DNA of 63,813 nucleotides, filler included, from Hyphochytrium catenoides (taxonomy: Eukaryota; Protista; Hyphochytriomycota), in the NCBI GenBank assembly GCA_900088475.1. It is 10 parts of 10 records of this genome, joined end to end, with 100 filler letters (N's around TTAATTAATTAA, not from the genome) between each part and the next. Parts side by side here need not be neighbours in the genome. Positions count along the whole stretch, not along the records: positions 1 to 19,862 come from FLMG01000730.1; 9 more parts are not named here. One strand, written 5' to 3'. This document shows positions 1 to 19,862 of this stretch, one piece after another; position 1 is the first letter of the stretch; each line of letters begins with the position of its first letter. The translations under genes and the position numbers were made by a program. The notes beneath the pieces were generated by a model. It worked only from the letters and a program-made list of their open reading frames with translations, was not told the DNA's origin and made no database searches.

Positions 1-355
1 GAGAGAGAGAGAGAGAGAGAGGTGTCGAGGGAGACAGACAGAGAAAGAAGGAGAGATGAGAGAAGGGCAGAGAGTCAGAGACAACGGGTCGAAGATAACA
101 CTGATCAAAGAGAAAGAGGAGAAGAGCGGCGACACACATCAGTCCGAGCACCAACAGCAGCTCCTCTAGAGATTGAAGACCTACGAGTCCAAATCTTCAC
201 AGCAGAGAATGGAAGAGCGAAAGAGTGACAGTGCCAGGTCTGGCATGAGAAGGAGGCGAACCAGGGAAAAAGAAGGAGAAGAGGAGATGCTCCCCAATCT
301 TTCCTGGGAGTAGAGAAGGTAAGCAAACAGCTCAGCGGCAACAAACGCCCCTCAC

Positions 356-1075
356 CATGGAGCAGAAGCGTCCTAGATGATAGACCTTGGACTCTGTGGC
401 GCCAGCACCTGAATCCAGTAGTCTAAAAATCAAAGGGAAAGAGGAAGACTAAGTAAAAGGGAGAGAGAGAAAGAGAGAGAGAGAGGAAAGGATGAAAGGA
501 GAGACCAAGTCCGACAGAATAGATTAACGAGAGCTTCTTTGTGGGTAGAACGGAAGCCATGCAAACTGTGAGCCTTAGAGCGGAAGGAAGAAGGCTTACA
601 TTTGCAGCTTTGTTCTCCAGTCTTCTCCGTACATCTGCTCAGGTTCGTACGAGGGGCCACAGAAACGCACCTAAAGAGACGAAGGGAGAGAGAGAGATTG
701 AGACTGGAGATAAAGAGAGAGAGAAATAGTCGTTTACCGTGTGCGTGCAGGTATGATTCTGTCTATTGCACGCTGCGCATACACTTTCGCCGCATCCTCC
801 CTGAGACACTCTGTGCCCTGGATGCTTCTGTTTCGGGAAAGAGGACCATGAAGAGGTAAGGAAGGGAGGGGCTACCAATAGAATAGGGAGGCTAGGCTTA
901 GCCGGGGGAGGAGAGATACAGCGAAGAGGGAGAGAGTAAGTAGCACAAACAATGAGAGAGACTGGGACAGACTGCATGTTTTCAAAAGCAAGGATCGAGG
1001 CAAGGTCATGCAGACGAACAACCATTAGGCAAAAGAATAAAAAAGAGATAGGGAAACAAAGAAAGAAAGAGAGGT

Positions 1076-1139
<64 letters not shown>

Positions 1140-1619
1140 AGGGAGAGAGAGAGGAGGAGGAGACGAGGTGATGGTCCTACTTCACCTTCAGATCAGAGAA
1201 ATATTCCACATGCCACGCGCTGCTCCCTACGAGAGATTCCCGCCAGCAAACGAGCTTGTCTTCGACCTTTCGGTGATTGGCAGAGGTGAAAGTGTAAGGC
1301 GACAAACGCAGGAATGGATGCGTGGAAACGAAGAGATGTCGTCCTCGTCCTTACCAGCTTGATGGCCGTGCGGACCTCAGGGTGCTTGCCCTTCCTAACA
1401 TCCATGTAGTAACTATTATCTAGCTTTAAGATAGCGGGAGCAGTGCAGGCGAGAGAGAGAGTAGAAGAGAGAGAGAGACAGAGAGAAGGGCAACAGGTGA
1501 GGAAGAAGAATTGGGGTAATACGAAATCGAACGTGATCAATCAAATGACTCTTGCGTCCATAACGCCTCCCCCCTGCTACCGTCTCTCTCCATTTTCATG
1601 ACTATTGTCCCTCTCTCTC

Positions 1620-1655
<36 letters not shown>

Positions 1656-2672
1656 CTCTCTCACACACACTCTCTCTCACACTCTCACTCTTTGTCTCTC
1701 GCTAGCTATTCGGCACACACACGCACACCGGACACAGCTTTTGGATCCCTGGCCTGTCCCTTCTCGCCACTGGGTCATCGTCCTCTACTACTTCCTCTTC
1801 TCCCTCTTTCCTTTTTTGTTTACTCTTCTCTTCTAATGAACTGTCTACTCCCCCTTCTGTCGTACCAGTGCTCTGATGAGATACTGAAGGTAAAGGATGA
1901 AGGCGTTCCTCGGGTCTTTCTGAGCCTTCAAAGAGCGGAAGAGAAGGAGAGGATCTGTGTCATCCTCCACATCCGGATGCAGGCGTCGCGGGCGCTTAGA
2001 CCCGGCAGATCTTCTAGCTTTAGACCCAGAACCTAAGGGAGAGAGAACGAGAGAGGGAGAAAACCGACGAGAGGGCGCAAGAGAGAGAGACACACACATA
2101 TAAGAGCAGCAGATATATCACAATCCAAAGGCTCAGTGGTCTAAAGAAGAGAGGTGAAGAGAAGGATAAATGACTTTTGACGAGAGGGAAAAGAAGAGAG
2201 AGAAGAGAAAATGAAGAGGAAGAGAAGGAAAGGGACGGGGCAGAGCTGGACGAAGAGAGAGATGGCAGAAGAGAGAAGGTAGAAGAGAGAGAGTGAAAGA
2301 GCAAGAAAAACAATGGAGAGAGAGAGATGTTGAATTAGAAGTCAATGGGCTCGTCGGAGCTCTCAGGCCTACCACCCAGCATATCTTGTTTCTCTGAGCT
2401 CTTCTGCCTCTTCATGGCAGGTGCCACCACTGGAGTTTCTTGCCTGCTCTTCTCTTTAGCTCTACCACGTCTCTCTCTCTCTTTCTTTTCTCCTCTCTTG
2501 CCTCCATTTGCTTCCTCCTCTGAGGCCGAAGAGACGGCACTCTCTTCCACCTCATCGTCCGCCACGAGAAAATCTCTCATGCTGTCACTGTCAGAGGCCT
2601 CGTCCGCAGACCTGCGACGGAGGAGAAAGAGCCATGAGTAAAAGAATGGGACGGCAACAGAGAAAGAGAGAC

Positions 2673-2707
<35 letters not shown>

Positions 2708-3036
2708 AGAAGGAGAATGAGTAAATAGGGAGACAAGGTGGGTCGAGAACTGCGAAGGAAAGAGAGGAGCTTCTGCTTTGAGAAGGCTGTAGAGAGCGTC
2801 TTACCTTTTGTCAGCGTTAGCAATGAGAGCACCAGCGGATTTCCTAGACTCAGAACCTGAGTCAGCTGTCTGATCTTCCCCGTCTGCCTCTTCCCTCCTT
2901 TTCTCATAATAGTAAACCCTTTTTTCGCCTCTCCCCTTCCTTTCTATCACCAGCGGCAGCTGTCTTCAGCCAACACTCTACTCTCTCTCTTTCTCGCTTT
3001 CTTTGTGTGTGTGTGCCATTCTCGCATGTCTGGCTC

Positions 3037-3068
<32 letters not shown>

Positions 3069-4022
3069 NNNNNNNNNNNNNNNNNNNNNNNNNNNNNNNN
3101 NNNNNNNNNNNNNNNNNNNNNNNNNNNNNNNNNNGTCCTTCCTGCTGCTAGCCGCTGGCATGTACCACTCTCTTTCTTCCTTCCCCCCTTCTCTCCCTGT
3201 CTCGCTCTTGCTCTCTCTCTCTCTCTCTCTCGTCACTTCCCCTTAGTTCCTCCTCCCCCTAGGTAGTGAATATGCTTACCTTGCTGTCACTATTGGTGGG
3301 CTACTCCTCCTCTTCTGTCTCTTTCCCTCTTTCCTCTCTCTCTCTTGCTTTCTCTTTTTCAAAGATGAAGACGATTCTTCAAAGTCCTCACTGTCTGCCG
3401 TCTCTTCCAAAGAGGAGGAGAAAGAGAAAGAAGGATCATCCAGTCTGCCGGTCTTCTCTTTCGCCTTGAACTGTTGATGCTTTGTCGGCTTTGAATGGGC
3501 AGATCGCGTGATACGCGGCTTGGAAAGAGAGAGACGATGGGTTTGTTCTCTCTCATCTCTCTCTCTCTCCTTGTTGGCGGGTGTCTCTCCTTCTCTCGTG
3601 CCTTGGAACACCACTTCTGCGTCAGAATCTGAATCCAAGCCATCCAGAGCAGGCGCTGGGCGAGAGAGAGACTTGCGAAGAGAGAAAGACCTTGCTGCAC
3701 TCTTCTCTCCTTGTCCTTTCTCTTTCTCTAATGGTCTAGGCACCGGAGTACTCAGACTCCCATTCTCTTTGTTTAAAAGAAGCACCGCTTCTTCATCACT
3801 GTCTGTCTCTTCTGCATCGGAGAGAATCCTCTTCTTCTTGGTGGAAGAGGCTGGGGTGGCGGTGGAAGACGCGGGAGAGAGGTTCTCCTTCTCTTTGCCT
3901 TTGTTTTTCCCTGGAGTTCGCGTGGTTTCTTCAGTGTCTAGGCTATTGGGTCTCTCCTTGGAGCTATCTCTCTCTTCCTCGTCATCATCATCCACAGTGT
4001 AAAGAGTACTCTTCCTTGTCAT
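356..4022 (-). CDS. DUF4211/CCDC82-like protein; multi-exon, acidic low-complexity N-terminus, 3' end not resolved
   Basis: The C-terminal exons splice in phase: ...NAFILYLQYLIRAL|LDNSYY...AIKL|VEDKLVCWRESLVGSSAW...DLK|KHP...CAACNRQNHTCTHT|VRFCGPSYE...|...YHLGRFCSM. The SSxW, CxACxR, FxGxxY and GRFC motifs resemble DUF4211. The N-terminal exon is ORF 3276..4022. The linkage across 2800-3280 is uncertain because of an N gap. Confidence 0.7.
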
Positions 4023-4395
4023 TGTTCGTGGAGGTCTCTTCTGGCCTCTGTCCTCTCTCTCTCTCTACCTGCCGTCTCTCGTCTGTGCACGTTGGCTGTC
4101 TGTCTTCTCTCCTAGTCTCTTTCTCCTCGGCTGTCCTGGTTCTTTCTTCTCGCGCTAAGGAGTAATATCTCTCCGCAGTCTCAGAAGTGCAACGCGACAA
4201 TCTGAAGAATCTCTCTTCTCATCTCATCGGCTTGCTCAGTCTTGCCGTCTCTGTTGCTTACACCACAGGCTTCTCTCTTCCTCTCTCCCCACTGCAGGGC
4301 GGTCTCTCACTTCTTTCTCTCTCTCTCTTTCTCTCTCTCTCACGCTCTGTCTCTTCAGAACCCAAGTCTCATCCTAAGAACAGCAGTAACAAAAT

Positions 4396-4538
4396 GCGCG
4401 GGAACTAGCCCGCGAAAATTTCAAGTACTGAATCCTTCAATTTCTCCAAAAATTACAATCCGCTAAACTCTTTATCTTCCACCAAGGAAACCTTTCGCAA
4501 CAATGGAAGTGAAGGTTTCGCGCCAGGTGGTTTCGCGC
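4396..4538. promoter_or_regulatory. Cluster of E2F-like sites upstream of the DUF4211 gene
   Basis: TTTCGCGC at 4516-4523 and 4531-4538 matches TTTSSCGC. Near-matches on the reverse strand: TTCCCGCGC at 4396-4404 and TTTTCGCGGG at 4409-4418. Confidence 0.4.
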
Positions 4539-4854
4539 GCTTTGAAGACTTTTCGTTGTTGGTCCTCTCTCTTTCTCTCTCTCTCTCTCTTTCCTCTCTC
4601 TCTCTCTCTCTCTCGTTCTCTCTCTCTCTCTTTCTCTCTCTCTGTCTCTCCCTTGCCCACTCTTCCGCACTAGCCGCCGCTCTCTGCGGAACGCTGTCTC
4701 CTCCGCTGGCTTCCGCTATGTCTCTGAGTTCTGTCTCTTCTTCTCTCCTCACTCTACTTTTACCTCTCTGAGCGCAGAGTTCTAGGACCACAGAGCGTCA
4801 AACAGTTACTCTCTGCCCAGGCGCTTTATATTGCTAGAGCACTTCTCTCTCGGA

Positions 4855-5416
4855 CTATTCTCTCCGCCCGTGGAGCGTCCTACTCTTTCTCCTCTGCGAA
4901 GCCTCTTCTCTCCCTCAGCCACTGATACACTTTCTGCTTGCATTTTTCAAGACCTGGTGAGGAGATCAGAGGGCGGGCAATAGAAAGTCATAGTAGAGTG
5001 AGGTTAGACGGTGGGCGAAGGCAACGCAACGACAAACCTTTCTAGAGAGAGAGAGAGAGACAAAAGAGAGAGAGAGAGAGAGAGAGAAAGAAAACGACTA
5101 AGCAGAAGCAGAGGAGTAAGAACAACACGAAAGGGACTGGACGAGAACGCAACCAGAGAAGAAGGCCCCCTACGTACTTGTCGCTTCCATGCTGTCCAGC
5201 CAGGGAGAATACATTAGCTCATCTGCTGACTGGCGCATCTCAGGCTATCAGCGACGATGAGGAGAGAGCGAGAGAGAGCGAGAGAAGAGAGAGAAGGGAG
5301 AGAAAAGCGGAGAGAAAGGTTAGCCCCAGAATTGTTCCTAATCTCAAGCACACCAGCTCTCACAACCTCGCTACTCTTCTGTGTATACCCCTTATCCTAG
5401 CTCATATTTCTCTCTT

Positions 5417-5447
<31 letters not shown>

Positions 5448-6155
5448 TTTCAACCCTTTCTCCTTCCCTGCTTCTGCTGTCATATGTTCCTCCCGTGGAT
5501 ATCTTTCGTCTCCCGCTGTCAGAAAGCGTCTCCGTACCTTCTTCTGCAGACAGTTCTCAATAAACCCCTCGAAGTCTTCGCTGAACTCTCCTTTGATCGG
5601 ACACAGCCAGTCAATAACGGAAAGCACTAGAAGTAGCAACAGTTGTTGCCGCAGACCACTATGGTAGAGAGAAAGACCGACAGAGAAAGAGAGAGACAGA
5701 GGAAGGGGAGAGAGAAAAGGAAGGGGAGGGGAACGGGCAGAAGTAGGAGCAGATAGAGTGAGGACAAGAGAGAGAGAGGCGAGAGGGAGAGAGAGAGAGG
5801 GAGTGCAGCTCTCCTACCTTTGGGAAGGCGGGGTGGGTCGCCTTCAACCACCGTTTGAATAAACTGGGACAAAGGGACCAAGCGAAAGGAGAGAAAGAGA
5901 GAGAAAGGGGGCGCAGCCCAGTGGCGAGATTAGTGGAAAGACAGAGACAAGACGAGAAAGAAAAGTGAAGAAAGAAAGAGACCGAACCAATTATGTGTAA
6001 CCTCTGTCTCTTCTCCTTTGGCGCTGTCTTACCTCAATTCTGATCTGTAGGTCTTTGTATGGACTCCGGCCGGTTGCGCACTCCACAAGAACGAGTCCAA
6101 AGCTCCAGATATCAGACGCAAAGCTGGACACATGATGGTGAGGTACGCAAGGACA

Positions 6156-6195
<40 letters not shown>

Positions 6196-7641
6196 ACACG
6201 CGCGAGACAGAGAGAGAGAATGGAATTAAGAGAGAGAGAGCGAGGGAGAGAGAGAGACGGAGAGAGAGAAAAGAGAAAGACAGCGTGGAAACAGACCTAA
6301 GAATGACGAAGAGAGACTGAGGGAGAAGAATTGGTAGAAAGCCAGAGGAAGCGACAGAGGAGGAAGGACAGAAAATGACGCACTTATACTTCTCGTTTCG
6401 TAATCTCTCCGGAGACATGTACTGGAAAGTACCGACAAAGGTCTTGGCCATAGCTGCAAGGATAGGAGGGGAATGTCGGAAAGAGAAAAAGGTAAAGAGC
6501 AAAAGAGACAGCGAGAGAGAGAGGGAGAGAGAAAGCGCAGATAGAGAGAGAGAATAAAGAGACGTTAACCAAAAGTGGAAAGTGTCCGTACTCCACAGTC
6601 GATGAAGTGAGGGAGACAGGGGCTAACCTGAGTCACCGTCCAGTTGTCTTGCCAGGCCAAAGTCACTCAGTTTGACTAGCCCTGTGTTTGTCAGAAGGAT
6701 ATTCTGTGGCTTGATATCCTGGAGAGCGGAAGAAAAGAGGTGAAAGGAGTTCATGGTTTGCACAGCTAGGAAGAGAGAACAGATATAATGGGAGAGGGCG
6801 AAATAAAGCGAAAGACGATTGTGGAGCACAGGAGACACTCGGATAACCAGAGCACAGGTGGAGTGCGCTTGGAGAAGGGAGCCATAAGGTGAGGAGAGGG
6901 CCACAGCGCAGGAGCAGCAGAGAGAAGAAAGAAAGAGTAGGAGAGAGAGAGAGAGACAGCACGAGAGAGACAAGGCGTGCGGAGAGGCAAGAAAAGAGAG
7001 ACAAAGAGAAGAGAGACAGAGAGGCGCACGATAGAAAAGGTGAAGCAATGTAGACAAAACTCAAAGGACAAGGAGACTGAGGCAAGGAAAGGAGAGGACA
7101 GAGCTTAAAAAGGGAAGTAGAACAGGAACCAGATCCATGGCCTTACCCGATGGAACTGATTCAAGCTCTGGAGGTAGTTCAGGCCGCTAAGCACCTGGAA
7201 GGCAATCGCCGCTATAGTGGGCTCAGGGATGGATGGACCGTACTGCCAGGGTCCAGACACCAACAGCGAGAGAGAATGGCATTTTCGCCAGCGTTATGAC
7301 AGTGCAAAGGAAGAGGAAGGTCTATGGGAGATAGAACAGAACATAGAAAGAGTGATAGACGGAGAGGGAAAGGTGATAGGAAGAGACACGAACGCGGGAC
7401 GCCACAGAGAGAGAGACAAAGAGATAGAGGCCAAAGCGATAAATCGGAGAGGACGAGATATCTTAGATCTCACCTTGGCGAGCACTCTGTCGAGTGAGCC
7501 CATATCGCAAAATTCTAAACATACATTCACACTGATCTCGCTGAGGAAAGCCCCAAGAAACTGCACGACACTATGAAGGAGAGAGAGAGAGCGAAAGAGA
7601 ACGAGAGACACACAGAGAGAGGAAGAGAGAGAAAACGAGAG

Positions 7642-7679
<38 letters not shown>

Positions 7680-9411
7680 GAGGAAATGTGAGAGCGTGAG
7701 TCAGACTGCTAAAAAGAAAGCGAGAAGAAGCCGTTAGCCAATGAGGAAGAAATAAACGTCCGGCTGGCTAGTTGGCAGAGAGAAAGAGAATAAAAGCGCA
7801 TGGAGAGAAAGACAGACAGAGGCAAAGGCGGCAGACTCCTTGGAGCCTCACTTTGGACAAGAGGCGTTATATAGAGCCTTGATCTCTCTTAGCACCTGGT
7901 CCCGCTGTCCCTTCTCATAGATGTTAATGACCTGGTCTCGAAGAAAGCGAGTCGGTGGAAGAAAGAAGCAGCAGCAAAGCAGAAACGGAAGGATAGAGAC
8001 CGCTTTAGGAGGTGCTACAGAGAGGGAAACGTGTATGGTCCACAACTTGGATCTTATCAGGGACAGGGAACAGGGACAGGGAAAAAGATATTCGACGGCA
8101 CGTAAGTTTTAGGGAAGAGAAGCTTCGATTGAGATAGAAGCCCTGAGAGAGAAAAGCAAAGAAAGAGATTAGAGGTATTGAAAGAGATGGAGCGAGAGCG
8201 CGAGAGAGGTATTGTGAGGAAGAGAGAGAGAGGGCAACGAGCGAGAGATTAGAGAGAGAGAGAGAGCTTATTTTGGGGACGATGTGACCTTGACGGCTAT
8301 GACAGTGTTCGACGGAAGATGAATCATCTTCCGAACCTGGCCACTGCTGCCCCTCCCAATGACTTCCACAAGCTCAAGATCTTGCTCCTTTATCTCCTAT
8401 ACAGTCTCAGTTAATAGAAGTGTCCCAAGCTGCACTTTGTAAACCAGACTTTGTAGACGACTGCGGTCAAATCAATTTCCTTTGGCTTCCTTGCCCCACG
8501 GTCTTCCTTTTCTTTCTCCATCTGTCTCCAAAAGCATCCGCACCAATATTCTCAACCTCCTTTCACTCTCCATTATCACCATGCTCTCTCTGGCTTGTAG
8601 CTTATTCAGGCTCTTCCCTCCTTTCTTCCATTTCTCTCTTTCTTGTCAAGAGCTTAGCTTCCTCGCTTGTCCTTCTCTAAATCTGTCTCAAACTTTGATC
8701 CTAGACTACTTCTCAAGCCACAAATTACCGCCAAGCTCTTCTTTCTTCCTGGTGTTGGACTCTTCTCTTCGATTGTCTCATCAATAAATAGCCCTTCTCT
8801 GTGCATCGTTGGTGGTTAAGGCGATCCAATCGGGTGAACAGTGAGTAACAGCATCTTCCGTGAGAAGGGATGCAAGGAGATTGGTATGCAGACCCGCCGC
8901 GCGAGGAGGAGGCTGTACGGCAAAGGAGACGGCGAGGAAAGAAAGAAGAGTGTAACAGAGAGAGAAAGAAAGAGAGCGAGGGAACGAAAGAAAGGAAGAG
9001 GCAGAGAGAGACAAACACAGAGAGAGAGAAAGAGGGGGCAGAGAGAGAGAAACTCAGAGAGAGATAATGGAGGCAGCAAAGAAAGGAACCAACCATGAGA
9101 GTGATTGAAGAGAGAGGACAGAGTAGGGAGATGGCCTGTATGGATAAGAGACAGTAAGAAGCAGAAGCAAAGTGGTAAGAAAGGGGCAGACGAGCCAATC
9201 TTCCATGAGAATTGAAATGTGAAGATGCTGGGAAGGATATGGAGATGGAAAACCCTTCTCTCTTGAACGTCTTGTCTCCGGCGCGGTAGGACATCATCAT
9301 CGCCTCCTCCTTTCCGTCATCCTCTTCTCCATCACTCTCCACCGCCAGAGGAGTCAGGGGCCTCCTTCGCGGAGAGGACGAAGCAGCCGCGGAACTCTTT
9401 TTCTCTGACAT
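4855..9411 (-). CDS. MAP kinase kinase (STE7/MEK family), about 13 exons; intron 1 is AT-AC
   Basis: The spliced model gives VIGRGSSGQV, IAVK, REIKAL, CLEFCDMGSLD, HR|DIKPQNILL, KLSDFG, AMAKTFVGTFQYMSPER, SDIWSFGLVLVECATG and FSEDFEGFIENCLQK. ATG at 9411; TAG at 4855-4857. Confidence 0.93.
8801..9240 (-). other. U12-type AT-AC intron in the MAP kinase kinase gene
   Basis: 5' splice site ATATCCTT at 9240; branch CCTTAAC at 8821-8815; 3' splice site CAC at 8803-8801. Removal gives in-frame GFSIS|REGLFIDE, which continues into the kinase exons. Confidence 0.85.
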
Positions 9412-10229
9412 TGATAGCCGTGCTCTTGAGGCTGACTGCACCAGCCCTACCAGGGTTATTGGCCTTATGTTTGCGGTATCTATCCTCTAATGATAAAGTA
9501 CAGTCTTGTCCGCTTCCATCTCTGTTCCTTCACTTATTGCTTCCGCGGAGCTGGGCAGTGCAATAGCAGAATGAGGAGGGAGCGTACCGCTTCCACTCTG
9601 TCTTGAACGCAGGAATATCGGGCAGGATGACCCAGGTATCTCGACTTCCAAGGTCAACTCTACCAGGCATGGGAGCTAGGAGAGAGAGCGCATCAAGGCA
9701 GTGCTATTGGGGATGATCAACTGGCCTAAGAGATTGCTCTGCTTGCCTCTATCGAGCATCATCCAGCCGCCCCGCTAAGAAAATTCTTCGCACAGAGACA
9801 CAGATGCACTGTCTAAGGCGCTGACGAAGCGGCAGCGGCCGGGCGGCGATGGAAAGGAAGCTTGAAGCTGCTGAAGATACACAAAGAATCAAACTCTATG
9901 ATTCCTTAAACAGTTATCACAACATTTAGTTTCTGTGGGAGATGATTATGACTTGCGTCCATACTTGACATTTTGGAACAATCGGGTTAAGGGTAATTGA
10001 CAAGAATAAGCTTATTTGACACCAAATACCTCGTGATTGTGAGGTCAAAGTCAAGAAAGGCGTCAATTATCTCCTAGATTATCACTTACACAGAAACCCC
10101 TTCACGAAAGGACATCGGAAAGATTACGTCAATAGAAAAAATATGAAACATTTTATTCCCCTAGAAATGTATTGTTTAATAGTGAAGAGATAGAAATGTT
10201 TCGCTTTGCCTTTTGTTTCGTTCATCGAA

Positions 10230-10468
10230 GGTCATTTCTTTGATGTCTTCGAAGAGTCAGTCAAGCTTTGGACGGTGGAATCAGCAGGTAAGACAGCACC
10301 TGTCATGGGAGAGAGAGAGAGAGAGAGAGAGAGTGAGAGGAGAGAGAGAGAGTGAGAGAGAGAGAGCGAGAGAAAGACAGAAGAGAGTGAGGGAGAGAAA
10401 GACAGAAGAGAGAAAGACAGAAGAGAGAGAGGGAGAGAGGAAAGAGAGAGAGACAGAGAGGGAGAGAG

Positions 10469-10502
<34 letters not shown>

Positions 10503-10822
10503 ACACCGAGAAGAGCAAGACAAAGAGGGTACCATAGATGGATGTATCATCCTTGCCATGACCTGGCTACTCTCAGGAGCTTGCAGCACAGCGCGCACAA
10601 TAGCAGGACAAGCAGCCGCAAGAAGTGGAGCCATGGCATAGAGATTATCGACAGAGAAGAGAGAGAATTGACACCGTCGTCTCCTTCATAGTCATTTACT
10701 GTCCAGCTTTGTTCCTTCTTTTCTGTGAGTAGCAATTCCCTCCGTAGGGATGTACGGTTAGTTGCACCTGGCGCTGTAAAAGAGTTCTCCTCGCGAATCT
10801 TTCTGCTATCCTGGGCTCCCAT
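10230..10822 (-). CDS. Possible small spliced gene, head-to-head with the ELMO gene; reading frame unresolved
   Basis: A GT...CAG intron candidate at about 10562-10300 has a sense-strand (CT)n tract like the other introns. ATG at 10822 (MGAQDS...). No recognisable domain. Confidence 0.3.
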
Positions 10823-10941
10823 CCTCTTTCCCTCTCTCTCTCTCTCTCCCTCTCTCTCTCTGTGCGTCTCTGTCTGTTCTCTCTCTCTCTTGCCGAGCTT
10901 TCTCCTCATTCTGTTGCTGAGGAACGATAGAGGTCTGAAAG

Positions 10942-13900
10942 ATGGGAAACGCAGAGAGCAGTCCCGGCGTGTACCCTGACCCTGCGCGGTATCCAAAGCT
11001 GATAGGGGAAGAAGAGACAGCAGAACCTTCTCCTCTCTCTTCTTCTTTCTCCTTCAGCAGCTGGTTTTCTTTCCTGGGCCTTGCAGGGGACACGGCCAGC
11101 CCTTACTCAGAGTTTGCCCGGCTGCCTGAGGACAGGGAGATGGTGAAGCTACTGATCCTACAGAAGAAGCTGTACACTCGGCTTATAGAGAAAGAGGAGG
11201 TGAAAGGCTCTCTCCCTCTCCCTCCCTCTCTCTCCCTCTTTCTCTCTCTCCTTTTCCCTCCTTTTGCTTGTTCTATGGCTGCTCTCTTTACGTGTTCCCT
11301 TCCTTCACACTCCCTATCTGTCTGTCTCGGATATTTTGTCTTCCTACCGTTATAGCTCCCCTTCTCAGTCTCTTTCTCTCTTTCTCTGTCTCTTTCTCTG
11401 CCCCTGGGTCTTTTTTCAGACGAGAGCAAGTCTAGGCAAGCTGGCTCTCTCTTTTCCTTCTCCCTATTTCTCTCTGAGTTTCTTTGTCTTTCTTGGTCTT
11501 CTTTGGGATCTCTAACAGCTGTCTCTCCTCTTTACACTTTCCCTTCTGGGGCTCCCTCAGCATGTGGCGCTGTTACGGCGGCTTTGGAACAGCCTGACTA
11601 ACAGTTCTAAGGTAACCGCAGCTGTCTTTGCTTATCAGTCCTTCGTCACACTTTTGTCTTGTTGTTCCAATCTCTCTCTCTCTCTCTGTCTCTCTCTATT
11701 CTCTCTTTTTGTCGCGTTCTCTCTTCTGACTTTTGTCCCTACCCCACCCCACCCTCTCCCCCTCTCCCTCCCTCTCTGTCTTTTTGTTTGTCTGTCTCTG
11801 TATCTCTGTTTCTCTCTCTCTACTCTTTCTCTCTTTTCTCTCTCTCTCTCTCTGTCTGTGTCTGTGTCTGTTCCTCCCCCTTCACCCTACTCCATCCTCA
11901 CATCTATATCGTCTTCTTCCTCACAATATGTGCCTCACATTCTGCAATGCTTTCTTTTTTGGTATGTTCCGCAACTAACGTAGAGACTGTGACCTTCTTT
12001 CGTTTCTCAGCCGTTCCAGCGCTTTAGTCCTCTTTGGGAGGAGCTCGGCTTCAGCTCTTCCAATCCAGGTCCCGAGCTTCGGGGCGGTGGACAGGTAAAT
12101 AGGAGGAGAAGTGAAGGAAAGATGTTTCTTGTGGTCCCTCCTTTGATGGCTTTGTATCGGCAGGCTGTAGGGTCTACAGTCTCTTACGTACTCTCTCTCT
12201 CTCTCTCTCTTTCGATCTTCTCTCTTCCCCGTTCTCTCTCTCTATCTCTCTCTCTCTCTTCTTCCCTTGTTCTTCGTCTCAATCATTATGTCTCCTCTCA
12301 CGCCTCAAGCTGGGACTAGAATGCTTGGTTTACTTCTCTGAGCGCTATCCCGCGGAAGCACGGATGATGATCCGGCCTCAGCACTATCCCTGGGCCCTCA
12401 TGGCAGTGAAGATCACCAATGCCATTGCCCAGGTCTTCCACCTCAGAAATCCCGAGGGCAGAAGAGGTACAAGGCGTTCTCTCTCTCTGTCTCGGTCTCG
12501 CTCGGTCTCGCTCTCTGTCTCTCTCGCTTTGTCTCTCTCTCTCTCTGTCTCTCTCTCTCACTGCTCTGCTATTACAGACAAGAATCGGTTGCCAGAGTTC
12601 TCTTCCGCTCTCTCTCTCTTATTTCTCCCCCTCTGCTGTCTCTCGCCTTTTGTTCTTCAACCTTTGTCTCCATCTTCTTTTTTGTCTCTCTCCGTCTCTT
12701 CTGGCCCCTTCTCTCACTGTCTCTCTCTTCTATCTCTTTCTCTCTCTCTCTGCTCTCGGACACACCCACACCCACACGGACACCTCTATACTTCTGCAGC
12801 AGCGATATATCATCCCTTTCTTAAGCTGAGGCCACATTCTTTCTGCCCTTGCTTCTTTCTCCTTTCTCTTCTCTTAGCAATACCTGCTGCAAGCTTCTCC
12901 CCTAACGTTAGCTCTCTGTGTCCGTCGTCCTTGTCACTTCAGGACCCTTCCCCTGCACAAAGACTGTATACTGGCACGTTTTAGAAGATGAACTCGACTT
13001 CTTCAATCTCTTCTGCTTCTCTCTCTTCGTGATCGATGATATTTATATTGAGGCTTGCAGAAAGTCTAAGGTAACTCTTTTTCTTGGTACATTTTCATGT
13101 TTACTGTCTCTCCATGGAACCTTCCGCCGCTTTGTCTCTCTTAGAATGATCTCTGTCTCTCTGTCTCCCCCTTTTCTCTCTCCCTCTATGTCTTGCTCTC
13201 TCTCTCTCTCCTTGTGTCTCCCCACTTGCCTCTGGGTGTCTGTTGCTCTCCCTTCCTCTTTTGGTCTGTCGGCTCTTACTTCTTCTCTGCATCAAATAAA
13301 ACTATCATCCAGAACCTGAAGGCTACGTGGGCCCAGCACCCAGAGATGATAGCGGAGGTCAGTGCAGCCTCCGCCCTTTGTTTCTCTCGATTCTTCTCCT
13401 CCCTTTGCCTTCCCCAACCCCCAACCAATACCATCATCCCCTTCCTTTCTTTCTCTCTCTCTCTCTCTCTCTGTCACTTTCTCCCTATATGTTCGCACCC
13501 TCACTCTCTTGACTTCTTCTGACTTGAGATTTTCCCCGACACTGTTCTTCTTGCGGTCCGCCTTGTTCCTCTCCCTGTTCACTGATGTTTCCCAAAGCTC
13601 TATCATTCTGCTTAGTGCTAGATGGCCGCGCAATCTCTCTCCCTCTCTCTCTTTCTCTCTCTCTCTCCTAATTTTCCAATCTCACTCTCTCTCTCCTTTC
13701 TCTTTAGTTCGAAGGCCTCCTTCTCACACGCTGTACCATCTTTCTCTTTGTCTCTCTTAGTTTAGAGAAAAGCTACTGTCCGCTCTGAGTCAGGGACCAC
13801 AGAAAATTTCAGACCTGCAATACATCCGAACCGCAGGTAGATTGCTCTCATATCGGCTGTACCCTTTGGATGAGTAATCCTCTGTCTCTCTCCCTCGTTC

Positions 13901-14608
13901 CTCCGATTCTTGGTCTCTCTTGCCCTCGAGTCCTCTCCCTCCAGCACCCTTCTCTCTCGCTCTCGCTCTGTCTCTCGCTCTCTCTCATTCGCTCTCGGCT
14001 CTCTCTAGGCGTGGCTCGCCCTGTCTTTCTCTATCCTCTCTCTCTATCTCCTCTGCTTTCGCAATCTCTTATTCTTATATAAAGAGATTTTCTCTTTATG
14101 GTCCTTTCCTGTTCCCACTCCTTCCTGCTTTATTCGCTTTCTGCTATCCTCAAAGGCAAGCTGCCTCTGATCCCAAATCAACCTCGCCTGTCGCTACTTC
14201 TATTGACGCATTCTCTCCAATGTTCTGTCGCACCAAAGGCGCTCTACCTTCAAATCTATGGAGCCGGGAGGGCACTGTCCCGATGGGTGTCTGTGAGTAC
14301 TCGAGAAAGGGCTGGAAGGCGGTGGGTAAGAAGCAAGAAAGAGGAATGAAGAGGCTGCAGTCCACGTGAGTACCTTCTTTCTTGCGAGTGCTTATGATGC
14401 TCTCTTTCTCTCTTCGATCCCTTCTCGTGACCCTAGCTCTTCTCTTTCTTCACTGGTGTTGACTCGCTCGTCAGTTCCTAGGGTTAGCTCACCCGTGGAT
14501 TGTTTCTCTTGCAGACCTTGACATTTCCCCTATCGGTCGGTCTTCTTTCTTTCTTTCTCTCTCTCTGTATGTATTCTAACGCTTTATTTATTTATTTCTT
14601 ACTTTCTT

Positions 14609-14643
<35 letters not shown>

Positions 14644-16745
14644 CCTCCTTTTGCCCTAAACACTTCTTTCTCCCTCTTTCACCGCGTAGTGCTTGGGCAT
14701 CGGCGCCTTTCTCGCAAGAGGACAATGAACAGTCGCTACTCTCCGAATGCAAGAAAGCCATTCCATCTCTCTCCTCCTGGAAGAGCCAGCCCGAGGAGAG
14801 GGAGAGAGAGACGGAAGGGTCCCTCTTCGAGAATAGTAACAGAATGGCTGATCCCTTCGGGCAAACAGAGGACGAAAGAAGGACCGGGCCTATGCCAGCG
14901 ATATCTGTTGAAGAGGGTAAGAGGGAAGGGGAAAGAGAAGGGGAGAGAGAGAGAGCGGCTGAGAACACATTGGAAGAAGAAGGAGAGGATGAGGAAGAAG
15001 ATAGGACCGAAGGGCGGAGCAGTACTGAGAGTCTAGGGCACGGGGCGAGAGCGGATCTCTTCGCTGGTCTCACGACGAAGAACTATCAAGAGCTTGTGTT
15101 CGATGGTACGTCCTGATCAGGACTTCAGCCACTGGGGACGGGGGAAGGGTTCCTCGCTTTCCTACCTATCTTGTACTCTTCACGTCTCTCTCGCCCCCTC
15201 GCTCTGTGTTGTTTGGGTGTGACACTGTCTCCCTCTCAAGTCCACTGTCACGCTCTTCCTCTGTCTCTCGATGCGCTCAGCGCTTCTTTCTTCATTGTGA
15301 TCTTCTCCATCGCGTCTTGTGTCTTCTCTTTCTCGCCTCTCTCTGTCTCTCTTTTCACCCCAGTCACGTTCTACTTCTCTTCCCTTACCTCCATGCTCTA
15401 AAACTATCATTCTTTCCCTCCTCAGCTCCAACCCCTAACCCTCGAGAGGAGTTAAGCTCTGAAGAGTCTGTCCCCCCGTCTCCCTCTCTCTCGACACCCA
15501 CCAGTAGTATGGAGTCTCCGCTCTTTCAGGTGAGATTGTGCCTCTCCCTTATAAAGCGCAATCTATTCTCCACTAGCTCTATGTCTTTCTTACCTGCAGC
15601 TCATGTCTCTCTCTCTCTCTCTCTCTCTCTGTCTGTCTCTCTCTCTTCCTTCGCTTTTATAAGTTTCTGTCCTTTCTGCTCCGTTTTTGAGCCTATTCCT
15701 CTTGCCTGCCTTTCGTGTTCCTCTCTCTGTTTGCCTTGGGGTTGAGTTGCTGCCTACATGCTCTGCAAGACTGTCATCTGCCTTACAATCTCCGGTTAGG
15801 ACTTTTTGGATATAACTCGAGGAGAGGCGGAGCTCTCCAAACAGAAGGAAGTGGAAGAGGCTCTAGCGATAGAGCGAGGAAGGAGGCTAGATCTGCAGCG
15901 AAAAGTGGAGACAGCTGTTGAGATGGTTAGCCGCACCTTTGCTGCTTTAGCTCATGTCCTTTTCCTCTACCTCTTTTCCTTCCTCCGCTGCCGTCCTCGT
16001 CCTCTCTCTCCCTCGTTATCTCTCTCGCTCCTCGCTTCTCCGTGTCTGAGTGCAATACCTACTTTCTACTGGGCATGCGTGCGAGCCTTTGCGCCTCTTC
16101 CTGGCCAGGCTACTGATGGTTTATCCTCATTCCCTAGTCTTCTCCTCGTCTGTCGTCTCACCCTCGGATCCTATCTTTGTGCTGATAGTGGAAGGCAAGG
16201 CACACAACCGTGCGAAGCCAACTGGCTCATCTATCGGAGATACTTTGGCCTGGCGCGAGGTGGAAGGATGTTGAGGAGAAAGAGCTTGTTGAGCCCGAAA
16301 GGGTACGTGTGGCCTTGAACGAGGCACACATTCTCCTTCCTTTGTTCCCACTTCATAACTTACGTCTCAATTTTCTGGCCCTTGGGCTCTTTATCAGAAT
16401 GGTCTATTTTGACTTAGTAGCCCCGGTTAATCTTTGCATCTTGCTTTCTATTGCAGCTATTCATCTGCTATTCATGGTGCTATTGCGTGACTGCTAACGC
16501 TCTGTAAGAGCCTGAGGTCTCTGTAACGCTTATTTCTTTTCTCTATCAGCCAATTTCCTTATTATCTCCTTTACCATGCTCCTATCTAGGTCAAGAGAGT
16601 ATTTAGAAAGGCGATGGTGGTCGTTCACCCAGATCGTTGCGTGACGCTGACAGAGGAGCAGCAACTGCTTGCACTTGCCATCCATACGGAGCTCGACCGC
16701 ACCTGGGACATCTTTGATCGCATGGAATATAGCTTCGGCTTATAA
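10942..16745 (+). CDS. ELMO/CED-12 (ELMOD-type) domain protein fused to a C-terminal auxilin-type J domain, 13 exons
   Basis: All exon phases are compatible. N-terminus MGNAES (myristoylation-like). ELMO motifs: LLRRLWNSL, WEELGFSSSNPGPELRGGGQ|LGLECLVYF and YPWALMAVKIT. The acidic linker has DPF and DLF. C-terminus: WKARH..VRSQLAHLSEILWPGARWKDV...|VKRVFRKAMVVVHPDR...WDIF. TAA at 16743-16745. Confidence 0.85.
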
Positions 16746-17235
16746 ATGTAATATGACCATGACGATATCGGTAACCTTGTGATTCCTTACCGTATGGAGA
16801 CGTATAGAGCCAGGAAGTGTGGGACTATCCAGAATGACTGAAAGCGGGGATCAAGAGATTGGCTAAATAGAAGACAAAGATAGACACTCTGGAAGTCTTT
16901 ATATTAACTCTAAGGATACATGGCCTGAGGCTGATACTCTGAGGCTACCGTGATAACCCTCATGTGTCGCATCAAACAACAACTACGGATCAAGGGGAAC
17001 AGAGGCTCTGCCCACACTCCATTCTCAGCCGTCAGTCACAGCGATGAGTAACCTAATAAACGGTAGACCTGACAAACAAAAAGTGGCTACTGCGCGCTGG
17101 CCTCTTTGCCCAAGAAATCCAATAACCAATCTCTGATTGAACTCAGTCTTCAGATAAAAAAGCCGGTAAATGCCTACATTGATCTGGCTGTCGTGGTATA
17201 ATTACCAATTGTAATCCCTCCTGTCCGTACAGCGG

Positions 17236-17307
17236 GCGGATGTCGTATAGAGGTTAGTACTTCACGTTGTGGCCGTGACAACCTGGGTTCGATTCCCAGC
17301 ATCCGCA
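17236..17307 (+). tRNA. tRNA-His(GTG)
   Basis: Acceptor stem GCGGATG/CATCCGC; anticodon arm TCACG-TTGTGGC-CGTGA; T arm CTGGG-TTCGATT-CCCAG; T7 Pol III terminator at 17311-17317. Confidence 0.95.
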
Positions 17308-19828
17308 AAATTTTTTTCTCCATCACCGTCATGAAGGTTTCGCGTGAAAGCTTCCATCACACGTATCTTGCCATTGAAAGGGCTTTACAGAGTAACAAAA
17401 AGAAAGATTTCCGCGAAAGCTTCAGAGCTGACTTTTTGGAGCTACCTGACCTCTCTAAACAACATGTGCTCTCATTCCGAATCCAGAAAGCTCTAGCAAT
17501 GCTGGAGCGGTAAATAATACTATTTGATCATGAATAGACTTTGCAAGAGATTTGCCCCCTTTTGCTCCATCCATTTTGGAAACAGTCTTCAGCTTGTGGG
17601 ATCCTTTCACGCTATATATACTGCTACGCTCTCCATCGATACAGGTAAGACCGTACTTATACAGGATCATTTCTATAGTACAGTCTCCTGTCTTGTTTAT
17701 TCTAAACAAGACAACTCTTCCAACCTTGATGATCGGCCCTGACTACTGCCATTGACGTGGGATGTGAGCCTCTGGCGATGCTTTGGCATCTGCTGCAGGC
17801 TGTTGATGAACGTCCCCTGCCCCATTCCAGGCAGGGTGAGTGGTAGTAGTGGTATGAGAGGTTCCCCCTTTCTCTCTTCTTTCTTTGTTCTCTATATTCT
17901 GTCCCTTCGTCCCTACCCTGTCCAGCCATCGCCGGACCGACTATCTACCACTCTCTCTCGTGACTATGACTTCACTTACCTCTCACACCTGTCCTGCTCT
18001 CTCATGTCGCAGTTCTATCTGTTAAACTCTCTGCTGCTGGCTCGGTCGCCTTTAATTAGCAGGACACTAGCCTTTCAACAATAAGGGGGAGCATTAGGGT
18101 TGCAGTGGCCATTATCTCCTGGTGCTGCTGCTGTTTGAACCTTCTCAAGAGAGTATCTATGCTTTCAGGTGCTTGACCAGCAAGGGACTGATATGACTCG
18201 CTTGGCAGCAGGCTGATGGTTGGCGCACGGGGAGCATGACAACCTCCTGGCACCGCAGGCAGGCTGATCCCTCCGTTTGCCAGCCCTATCTTGCAGGCTT
18301 TTTCTATGCAACTACTTCGGTCGTCGTTCTGCGTTCACTCAACTCATTGTTGTTGCTGTTCTCGGCCTTCTTCTTCTTCTTCCTTTGCCTTCAGCTTTTA
18401 TTGTCGTAGTAGCACCACTGATAAATGAAAGCCGCCGAGCGCTGCTAGCGCTTCATAGCATGGTGATGGTTAGGTAGAAGGATGATGATGTTCGTCGTTT
18501 CTGTGGGAGAGGAGGGCGGGAGGGGAGACGACGAGGGTGGTGGTGATTTACCAAGCTTCCCTCATCAGCATCAAAAGTAATGTAGATCTCTTTTCATCTC
18601 TACTTTTTTAGACTACTACAGCCAACGCAGCAGAAAGATGGCAATGTCTCCCCGCGAGTTGCCATTCCTTCCGCCTCTCTTTTTGAAAGCGGCCGCGCTC
18701 TTTCTTGCAAAAGGAAAAGAGCTGTGCTGCTGATGGTGCGAGTGACGATGAGATCATAACTCTGTAGAGCGCTAGCAGGACAATAATATAGAGGGCTGTT
18801 TGTTCCTGCTTCTCACTTATGATGCTACTCTTCTCATGATGATTTCCAGTCTTTTTTTCTCTCAAAAGACAAGCGCCCAAAGTCATCAAAGAGCTATGAG
18901 GCCCTCTCTGCGGCCTTCAAGAAAGAAGAGATCAACCTATTCCTTATTACCTCCTCCGTCGTCGTAAAGTAGCTGTTGCATCAAAAAGAATCTTCATCAT
19001 TATTGTCCATGTCGTCGAAGAAAGGAGAATATTCCTACATATCTCCCTTTACCCTCACTTACTCTCATCATTCATAAGCTCCCGCTTCCTTCGCAACAAA
19101 TAGTAAGCGCCAGATGCCACCACACCTCTAGTAGTGCTAATTGTTACAAAGGGACGATGGGCAAGAAGGGCAACCCTACCAAGGTTATTTATAGCTAGCC
19201 CTAATAATCATCAATTATTATTTTTCTCATGAGCGCTCATCATGCCACAGCTGTTGCTTGCCCTCCGCAGCATCTCAATAAGATGCCCAACATTCGTCCT
19301 CTCTACGCACCACCACCCTAGTCGTAATGCAGGGTCATCATCATCAATCCCATGCGGTCGTCGGCCAACAACAATAACTCCAATTGCTACCATCACCCAT
19401 ACCAGCAGCAACAAGCACCACGAACAGCGATAGCAGCAGCTAGACAGAATAATGAGGGTCAGCAGCAAGTGCTTGGATGTATATATTTATACGCCGCATC
19501 ATCATCAAATAAACAATAAAATGTCTGCTGCTCCAGCAAATGGCGGTGGGTGGTTGGTAGGTGACCGCCGCCGCAGCAGCAACAGGCAGGCAGCAGCGAT
19601 AGCTTCTTTGAATCCTGGATGATGGCGATGATGATGCTCTACTTAGTAGTAGTCCCGCAGCAAGCAATAGCAGCTAATAATATTTCTTCATAGGAAAAAA
19701 TATCTACAAAGTACAGAGTGGCCGTGAAGAGAAATTCTTAGGCTTGGCCACCGAAAATAATTTATTATAGTAATAAACTATACCAAAATTAACCCCATGG
19801 GAAGGGTTGAAAAGCGATGAAAAAGTTT

Positions 19829-19862
19829 TGCGGATGCTGGGAATCGAACCCAGGTTGTCACG
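19829..19862 (-). tRNA. 3' half of a second tRNA-His(GTG), truncated by the contig end
   Basis: The reverse complement, CGTGACAACCTGGGTTCGATTCCCAGCATCCGCA, is identical to the 3' half of the 17236 copy and is followed by a T run. Confidence 0.85.

Follow-up and report, generated by a model that had tools for sequence, protein, structure and literature searches.

Does the MAPKK gene found on the minus strand of this Hyphochytrium catenoides sequence carry, as its first intron, an AT-AC intron of the U12 type, and, if it does, is that intron a sign that minor introns are unusually dense in this lineage? The window, i.e., the whole stretch of DNA (63,813 nucleotides, filler included), is composed of ten joined parts, and the gene lies in the first of them, a piece of 19.9 kb (FLMG01000730.1, positions 1 to 19,862), which is the part analysed here. 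The evidence presented below makes it very probable that MAPKK intron 1 is a genuine AT-AC U12-type intron, which would be removed by the minor spliceosome. The claim made for it in the first-pass annotation was well supported by its motifs, by homologue alignment, by splice-site scoring and by population variation.

The MAPKK gene and its first intron

We built and translated a gene model for this STE7-type MAPKK and obtained 12 exons that encode 349 amino acids in 1,050 coding bases, with no internal stops. The coding region spans 9411..5170 (-), from an ATG at 9411 to a TAG at 5172..5170, and is divided into exon 1 (9411-9241; 57 aa, ending ...DKTFKREGFSIS), exon 2 (8800-8729; 24 aa, REGLFIDETIEEKSPTPGRKKSLA) and exons 3 (8396-8289), 4 (7931-7852), 5 (7570-7474), 6 (7242-7147), 7 (6718-6628), 8 (6453-6384), 9 (6123-6033), 10 (5863-5818), 11 (5590-5538) and 12 (5244-5170), all on the minus strand. 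Apart from intron 1, the introns of the gene (10 of 11) are GT-AG, with donors such as GTAAG, GTGAG, GTAGG, GTACG, GTTAG and GTCAC, and because these ten are ordinary we regard the gene model as sound. They are 169-428 nt long and often contain (CT)n runs, and most of them are 67-83% pyrimidine on the coding strand. This range holds for nine introns of the gene, the other two, introns 2 (8397-8728) and 11 (5245-5537), being purine-rich on that strand (33% and 41% pyrimidine, respectively), with a long (GA)n run inside intron 11.

A profile made from 115 homologous MKKs gave the predicted protein a score of 321.5 bits, and the protein is 38-42% identical, over ~300 residues, to the best homologues among the matches listed. 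It has the attributes of a MAP2K/STE7 kinase, namely a full kinase domain (with the glycine loop GRGSSGQV, a VAIK-type motif, HRDIKPQN and DFG), a Ser/Thr pair in the activation loop, and the N-terminal motif of the family. The activation loop is DSAMAKTFVGTFQYMSPE, with the pattern S..AMAKT..VGT..YMSPE. Its two phospho-acceptor positions are separated by four residues (S-AMAK-T; 6384-6453 / 6628-6640, -), compared to three in animal MEK1. Within exon 1, we read the basic-hydrophobic stretch RRRPLTPLAV as a putative MAPK docking site.

The proposed U12-type intron 1 occupies 9240..8801 (-), is 440 nt long and 75% pyrimidine on the coding strand, and lies in phase 0. It opens with ATATCCTTCC immediately past the TCC codon of Ser57, so that its 5' splice site, ATATCCTT (9240..9233, -), matches the consensus of minor introns, [A/G]TATCCTT, at every position and is placed exactly at the first intron base. 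Near the other end, the branch-point sequence GCCTTAAC (8822..8815, -; in context gCCTTAACc, 8822..8814, -) agrees with the consensus TCCTTAAC at 7 of 8 positions, deviating at the first, which is G where the consensus has T. It lies within the ~45 nt before the 3' end in which a U12 branch point of the form TTCCTT[A/G]AC is sought, its candidate branch adenosines, 8817 and 8816, standing 16 and 15 nt, respectively, before the last base of the intron. Such a distance is towards the long end of what is usual for minor introns. The intron terminates in AC (8802..8801, -), reading ...GATGCAC, and is followed from 8800 by the exon 2 codons AGA GAA GGG (REG), giving an in-frame join of GFSIS to REGLFI, i.e., of Ser57 to Arg58. 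All four features reported at first pass (the donor, the CCTTAAC branch site, the AC end and the in-frame GFSIS/REGLFI join) were therefore present on the minus strand where they had been placed. Among minor introns, phase 0 is less frequent than other phases (doi 10.1101/2020.10.12.336362; PMC10639083).

No polypyrimidine tract is found in CACCAACGATGC, which separates the branch site from the 3' end. On splice-site matrices that we derived from 16 major-type introns traced in the same 19.9-kb piece (donors ranging from 4.2 to 11.7, acceptors from -3.0 to 16.8), the 3' end of intron 1 scored -6.6 as a major-type acceptor, versus a median of 12.4.

To obtain MKK homologues, we searched a collection of 15 billion proteins exhaustively with exon 3, which yielded a Carpediemonas MAPKK (P0002) as the best match (60% identity), and then used P0002 as the query, which gave at least 120 MKKs among the matches listed. 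No match was found in the same collection for exon 1, nor for the ELMO-domain exon of another gene of the piece, a metagenome scan with exon 1 likewise found nothing, and the ESM Atlas yielded no usable hit either. The N-terminal regions of 28 aligned homologues, from plants, Carpediemonas, Mastigella and unnamed sequences, share the conserved MKK motif GTFKEGDLxINKKGLxI, and the TFK...FSIS part of exon 1 aligns with its GTFKEGDLxIN portion. The product of the AT-AC join, TFKREGFSISREGLFI, aligns gap-free on GTFKEGDLAINKKGLLI and GTFQDGDLLLNQKGLRL in these regions, with FSISR corresponding to L-x-[IV]-N-[KR]. This N-terminal MKK motif is also present in two dictyostelids. One homologue, P0090 (TFKKGQFSIS), was considered as a possibly mis-spliced relative and rejected, as its ORF is unbroken on its own contig.

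Variation among DNA reads was examined over 5000-9600 in three runs (X1, X2 and X3) from two samples. The sequencing runs of any kind listed for 5000-9500 were these three and three tiny ones without coverage, and a look for RNA runs at 8300-9500 gave none. All 11 listed indels fall outside coding sequence, in introns or the 3' UTR, and five of the six listed coding SNPs are synonymous, a pattern that supports the gene model and shows purifying selection on the exons. Within intron 1, run X2 has a 1-nt deletion at 9214 and a SNP at 9137; the segment 9240..8801 thus tolerates frame-breaking change, as expected of non-coding sequence. At its 5' site no difference was listed in X1 and X2 (X3 had no depth there), and at its branch site and 3' end none was listed in any of the three runs. 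X1 and X3, which derive from the same sample, have different alleles at several sites, and X2, from the second sample, differs again (~1%); therefore two haplotypes are present, and either the organism is heterozygous or the samples are mixed. The contigs of the runs break at CT/GA repeats, and the reported joints all lie within such repeats.

The position of intron 1 was compared with that of introns in other MKK genes. A single exon contains the motif TASGTFQDGDLLLNQKGLRLIS in both Selaginella (L003) and Nelumbo (L004), with an intron just before T-A-SGTF, and Tieghemostelium (L007) has an intron at the same upstream position as the plants and none within the motif; P0090, P0010 and P0014 are all uninterrupted ORFs. 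The intron before T-x-SGT[FW] (Selaginella, L003 378/464; Nelumbo, L004 375/612; Tieghemostelium, L007 284/347) looks like an old position. The MAPKK described here is without this upstream intron and has the AT-AC intron ~13 codons downstream. Conservation of the intron position in MKK orthologues, which the first-pass annotation had proposed to look for, was not borne out: the position is not common to Selaginella, Nelumbo or Tieghemostelium, and it is therefore without support from conservation, which is typical of U12-type introns but not obligatory. It may represent a lineage-specific gain, or an intron that was lost elsewhere.

Minor-intron density and comparison with other lineages

Beyond the identity of this intron, it had been suggested at first pass that minor introns may be unusually dense in this lineage, on the basis of a count of two AT-AC introns in fewer than 100. 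The second of the two is located outside the 19.9-kb piece; if it is real and the pieces unselected, the count would point to enrichment. We traced ~30 introns in the 19.9-kb piece, in four protein-coding genes, with exact coordinates for 17 of them. Besides the MAPKK gene, these are a gene for an acidic low-complexity protein (~640-4022, -; at least 8 introns by eye), an ELMO/CED-12 domain gene (10942 to ~14370, +; 6 introns with coordinates and at least 2 more by eye) and a J-domain-like gene (~14690-16745, +; at least 3 introns). All traced introns of the ELMO and J-domain-like genes are GT-AG.

Features of the acidic-protein gene are a first exon of 248 aa, the sequence DFLVADDEVEE and a C-terminal part that is rich in Cys and matches DUF4211 weakly (E = 0.0065). 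A scaffold N gap (3069-3134) lies inside one of its introns, a GA-repeat intron, and the 248-aa ORF had no match when looked up as an exact sequence. The ELMO gene starts with MGNAES, a possible N-myristoylation signal. The last exon of the ~14690-16745 gene (...VVVHPDR...), which gave no Pfam match, reads to us like a J domain of the auxilin type.

A single intron of the ~30 traced, MAPKK intron 1, is U12-like. All remaining traced donors begin with GT and differ from both RTATCCTT and RTATCTTT, and in the 19.9-kb piece no classic branch site was found near a 3' end besides that of intron 1. The piece contains RTATCCTT at three places, one of them the intron 1 donor. The copy at 6702 (-) was rejected as a donor, being exonic (codons QNILL), and so was that at 16919 (-), which is located downstream of the stop read for the plus-strand J-domain-like gene, where no minus-strand gene is readable. 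Two further U12-like donors were considered and discarded, namely ATATCTTT at 8091 (-), which lies within intron 3, where the kinase alignment leaves an extra exon no room, and one at 9880 (-), which lies upstream of the start codon.

That the lineage is unusually dense in minor introns (on the order of 1% or more), with intron 1 as one sample of this enrichment, appears unlikely to us. One U12-like intron among ~30 is what first argues for it; however, this is a sample of one, picked because it was positive, and 1/~30 would accommodate a U12 density anywhere between ~0.1% and almost 20%. Were the density 0.3%, as in human, ~30 introns would give at least one such intron in ~9% of cases, whereas the 12% of Physarum would predict ~3-4 U12-type introns here, and no other traced donor is U12-like. 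An intron position that is not common to plants or a dictyostelid fits a lineage-specific gain, and the nearest MKK homologues have the motif variant seen in dictyostelids; yet in other organisms, too, minor introns are known from signalling kinase genes, e.g., those of the MAPK family (PMC8329584). The intron architecture also favours enrichment in being Physarum-like, with pyrimidine-rich repeats, lengths of 169-440 nt and 11 introns in one gene (PMC4758236). As for AT-AC introns specifically, they make up ~0.1% of introns in human and ~1% in Physarum.

In an Rfam scan of the 19.9-kb piece we detected only U3 and tRNA-His, and no minor snRNA gene, an absence that is expected from ~20 kb because the piece is so short. 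The U3 snoRNA is full-length (17647-17862, +; 113 bits) and has a TATATATA box ~25-30 nt before its 5' end. The tRNA-His(GUG) gene (17236-17307, +) lies 340 nt upstream of it, and a second, inverted copy of tRNA-His (19830-19862, -) is truncated where the piece ends.

Compared with the canonical U12-type AT-AC introns known from animals and plants, among them those in MAPK8/9 and MAPK12, intron 1 is alike in its ATATCCTT 5' site, its TCCTTAAC-type branch site near the 3' end, its AC terminus, its lack of a pyrimidine tract, its occurrence as a lone minor-type intron among major-type ones and its location in a signalling kinase gene. It differs from them in that its host is a MAPKK with an N-terminus of the plant/amoebozoan type, in that it is a phase 0 intron predicted from sequence, and in that its position is not common to the MKK genes checked.

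Physarum polycephalum resembles the present case in its intron-dense genes and its long, pyrimidine-rich, repeat-filled introns (with a median length of 231 nt and over 9 of them to an expressed gene; PMC4758236), and ATATCCTT-AC introns occur there as well, with 627 ATATCCTT introns counted (doi 10.1101/2020.10.12.336362). In Physarum, however, ~12% of introns are U12-type and the branch motif is TTTGA, 9-12 nt from the 3' site, while the classic CCTTRAC is found in 20 of the 3,648 introns whose 5' site is perfect, which is approximately chance level because the U12 snRNA is altered so that it pairs with TTTGA (doi 10.1101/2020.10.12.336362). The branch-site-binding stretch of this snRNA, GCAAAGAA, would not fit intron 1, whereas the canonical stretch fits. 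Intron 1 has the classic branch site and no TTTGA near its 3' end, and with 1/~30 introns U12-like, in what is a small sample, neither the TTTGA motif at 9-12 nt nor the ~10% U12-type share of a Physarum-type system was found. A further difference is that the Physarum reference strain is haploid (PMC4758236), whereas the DNA samples here show two haplotypes. A scaffold gap and the 2011 date of the DNA runs would also fit Physarum itself as the source of the piece, but we hold this to be very improbable; two studies and no RNA run are listed under the species label of the piece, whereas RNA runs of Physarum are numerous.

Canonical minor introns are also kept, in moderate numbers, by Amoebozoa and other protist lineages, among them Protostelium aurantium (265 minor introns), Pelomyxa schiedti (90) and Blastocystis ST1 (253, of which 77% are AT-AC), and in this respect they are similar to the present case (PMC10639083). 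Blastocystis further combines AT-AC dominance with an enrichment of phase 0 (PMC10639083), and intron 1 is likewise AT-AC and in phase 0, though the minor introns of Blastocystis are ~40 nt long and intron 1 is 440 nt.

Alternative splice joins at intron 1

A second reading of the locus concerns the join itself, namely that the major spliceosome removes a slightly larger intron, 9253..8799 (-), and that the U12-like motifs are fortuitous or only occasionally used; we hold this to be very improbable. Both sites that it calls for exist, a GT at 9253 (GTTTTC) and a CAG ending at 8799, and their join is in frame and free of stops, yet the donor scored -2.4 and the acceptor -9.0, each lower than all 16 traced major-type sites, and the CAG has no pyrimidine tract ahead of it. 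The resulting protein would be five residues shorter, with FSISR deleted and the sequence reading ...KREG/EGLFI..., whereas these five residues are present in 28/28 aligned homologues. Against the profile of 115 homologues, this product reached 315.4 bits, 6 bits below the AT-AC product. Given the base composition of intron 1, the chance of [AG]TATCCTT at a fixed site is p = 7e-5 and that of CCTTRAC inside a 30-nt zone is p = 5e-3; that a perfect ATATCCTT and CCTTAAC would co-occur by chance at the right spacing is very unlikely.

We also scored, in the same manner, every GT-AG, GC-AG or AT-AC splice pair with a donor in 9330-9150 and an acceptor in 8900-8740. Among the 71 pairs that are in frame and stop-free, the 9240/8801 pair ranked first, with the runner-up at 317.2 bits. 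Pairing the AT donor with the overlapping CAG (AT-AG) was rejected, as the frame is shifted and runs into a TGA.

A variant in which the two introns compete in a nested U2/U12 arrangement, as documented in other species (Drosophila prospero and human SRSF10; PMC8329584), is conceivable by analogy, GT..AG enclosing AT..AC here too with both joins in frame, but the enclosing GT-AG sites at this locus, unlike those of prospero and SRSF10, are very weak and are a candidate only.

Proposed splicing of intron 1 and its implications

Returning to intron 1 as an AT-AC intron of the U12 type, its removal can be outlined by the established model of minor splicing, from which the following steps are taken. 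The U11/U12 di-snRNP would bind jointly to ATATCCTT, the 5' splice site, and to CCTTAAC, the branch site, and U6atac would take the place of U11 at the 5' site. Recognition of intron 1 would require neither a polypyrimidine tract nor U2AF, in line with what is described for minor introns (PMC8329584). The bulged branch adenosine (8816/8817) would attack, and the 3' site used would be the first suitable YAC, 15-16 nt downstream of the branch. The join of Ser57 to Arg58 would in this way restore the conserved N-terminal segment TFKxGxΦxΦxRxGΦxI ahead of the kinase domain. Directly observed for intron 1 are its motifs, the frame of the join, its agreement with homologues and its behaviour as non-coding sequence, from which we infer that it is spliced out and that this organism has a minor spliceosome.

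For the annotation of this genome, AT-AC introns must be allowed, as a pipeline that accepts GT/GC-AG introns only would get the N-terminus of the MAPKK wrong. Taken alone, intron 1 is one more canonical minor intron. To our knowledge, gain of minor introns at scale is known only in Physarum. If, as we consider unlikely, minor introns are markedly enriched in the present lineage as well, with the canonical branch site kept, this may represent a second independent expansion, or a stage that precedes the transformation seen in Physarum, and MAPKK intron 1 would then be a lineage-specific gain. An enriched lineage whose branch site is untransformed would, if confirmed as such, show how expansions of minor introns begin.
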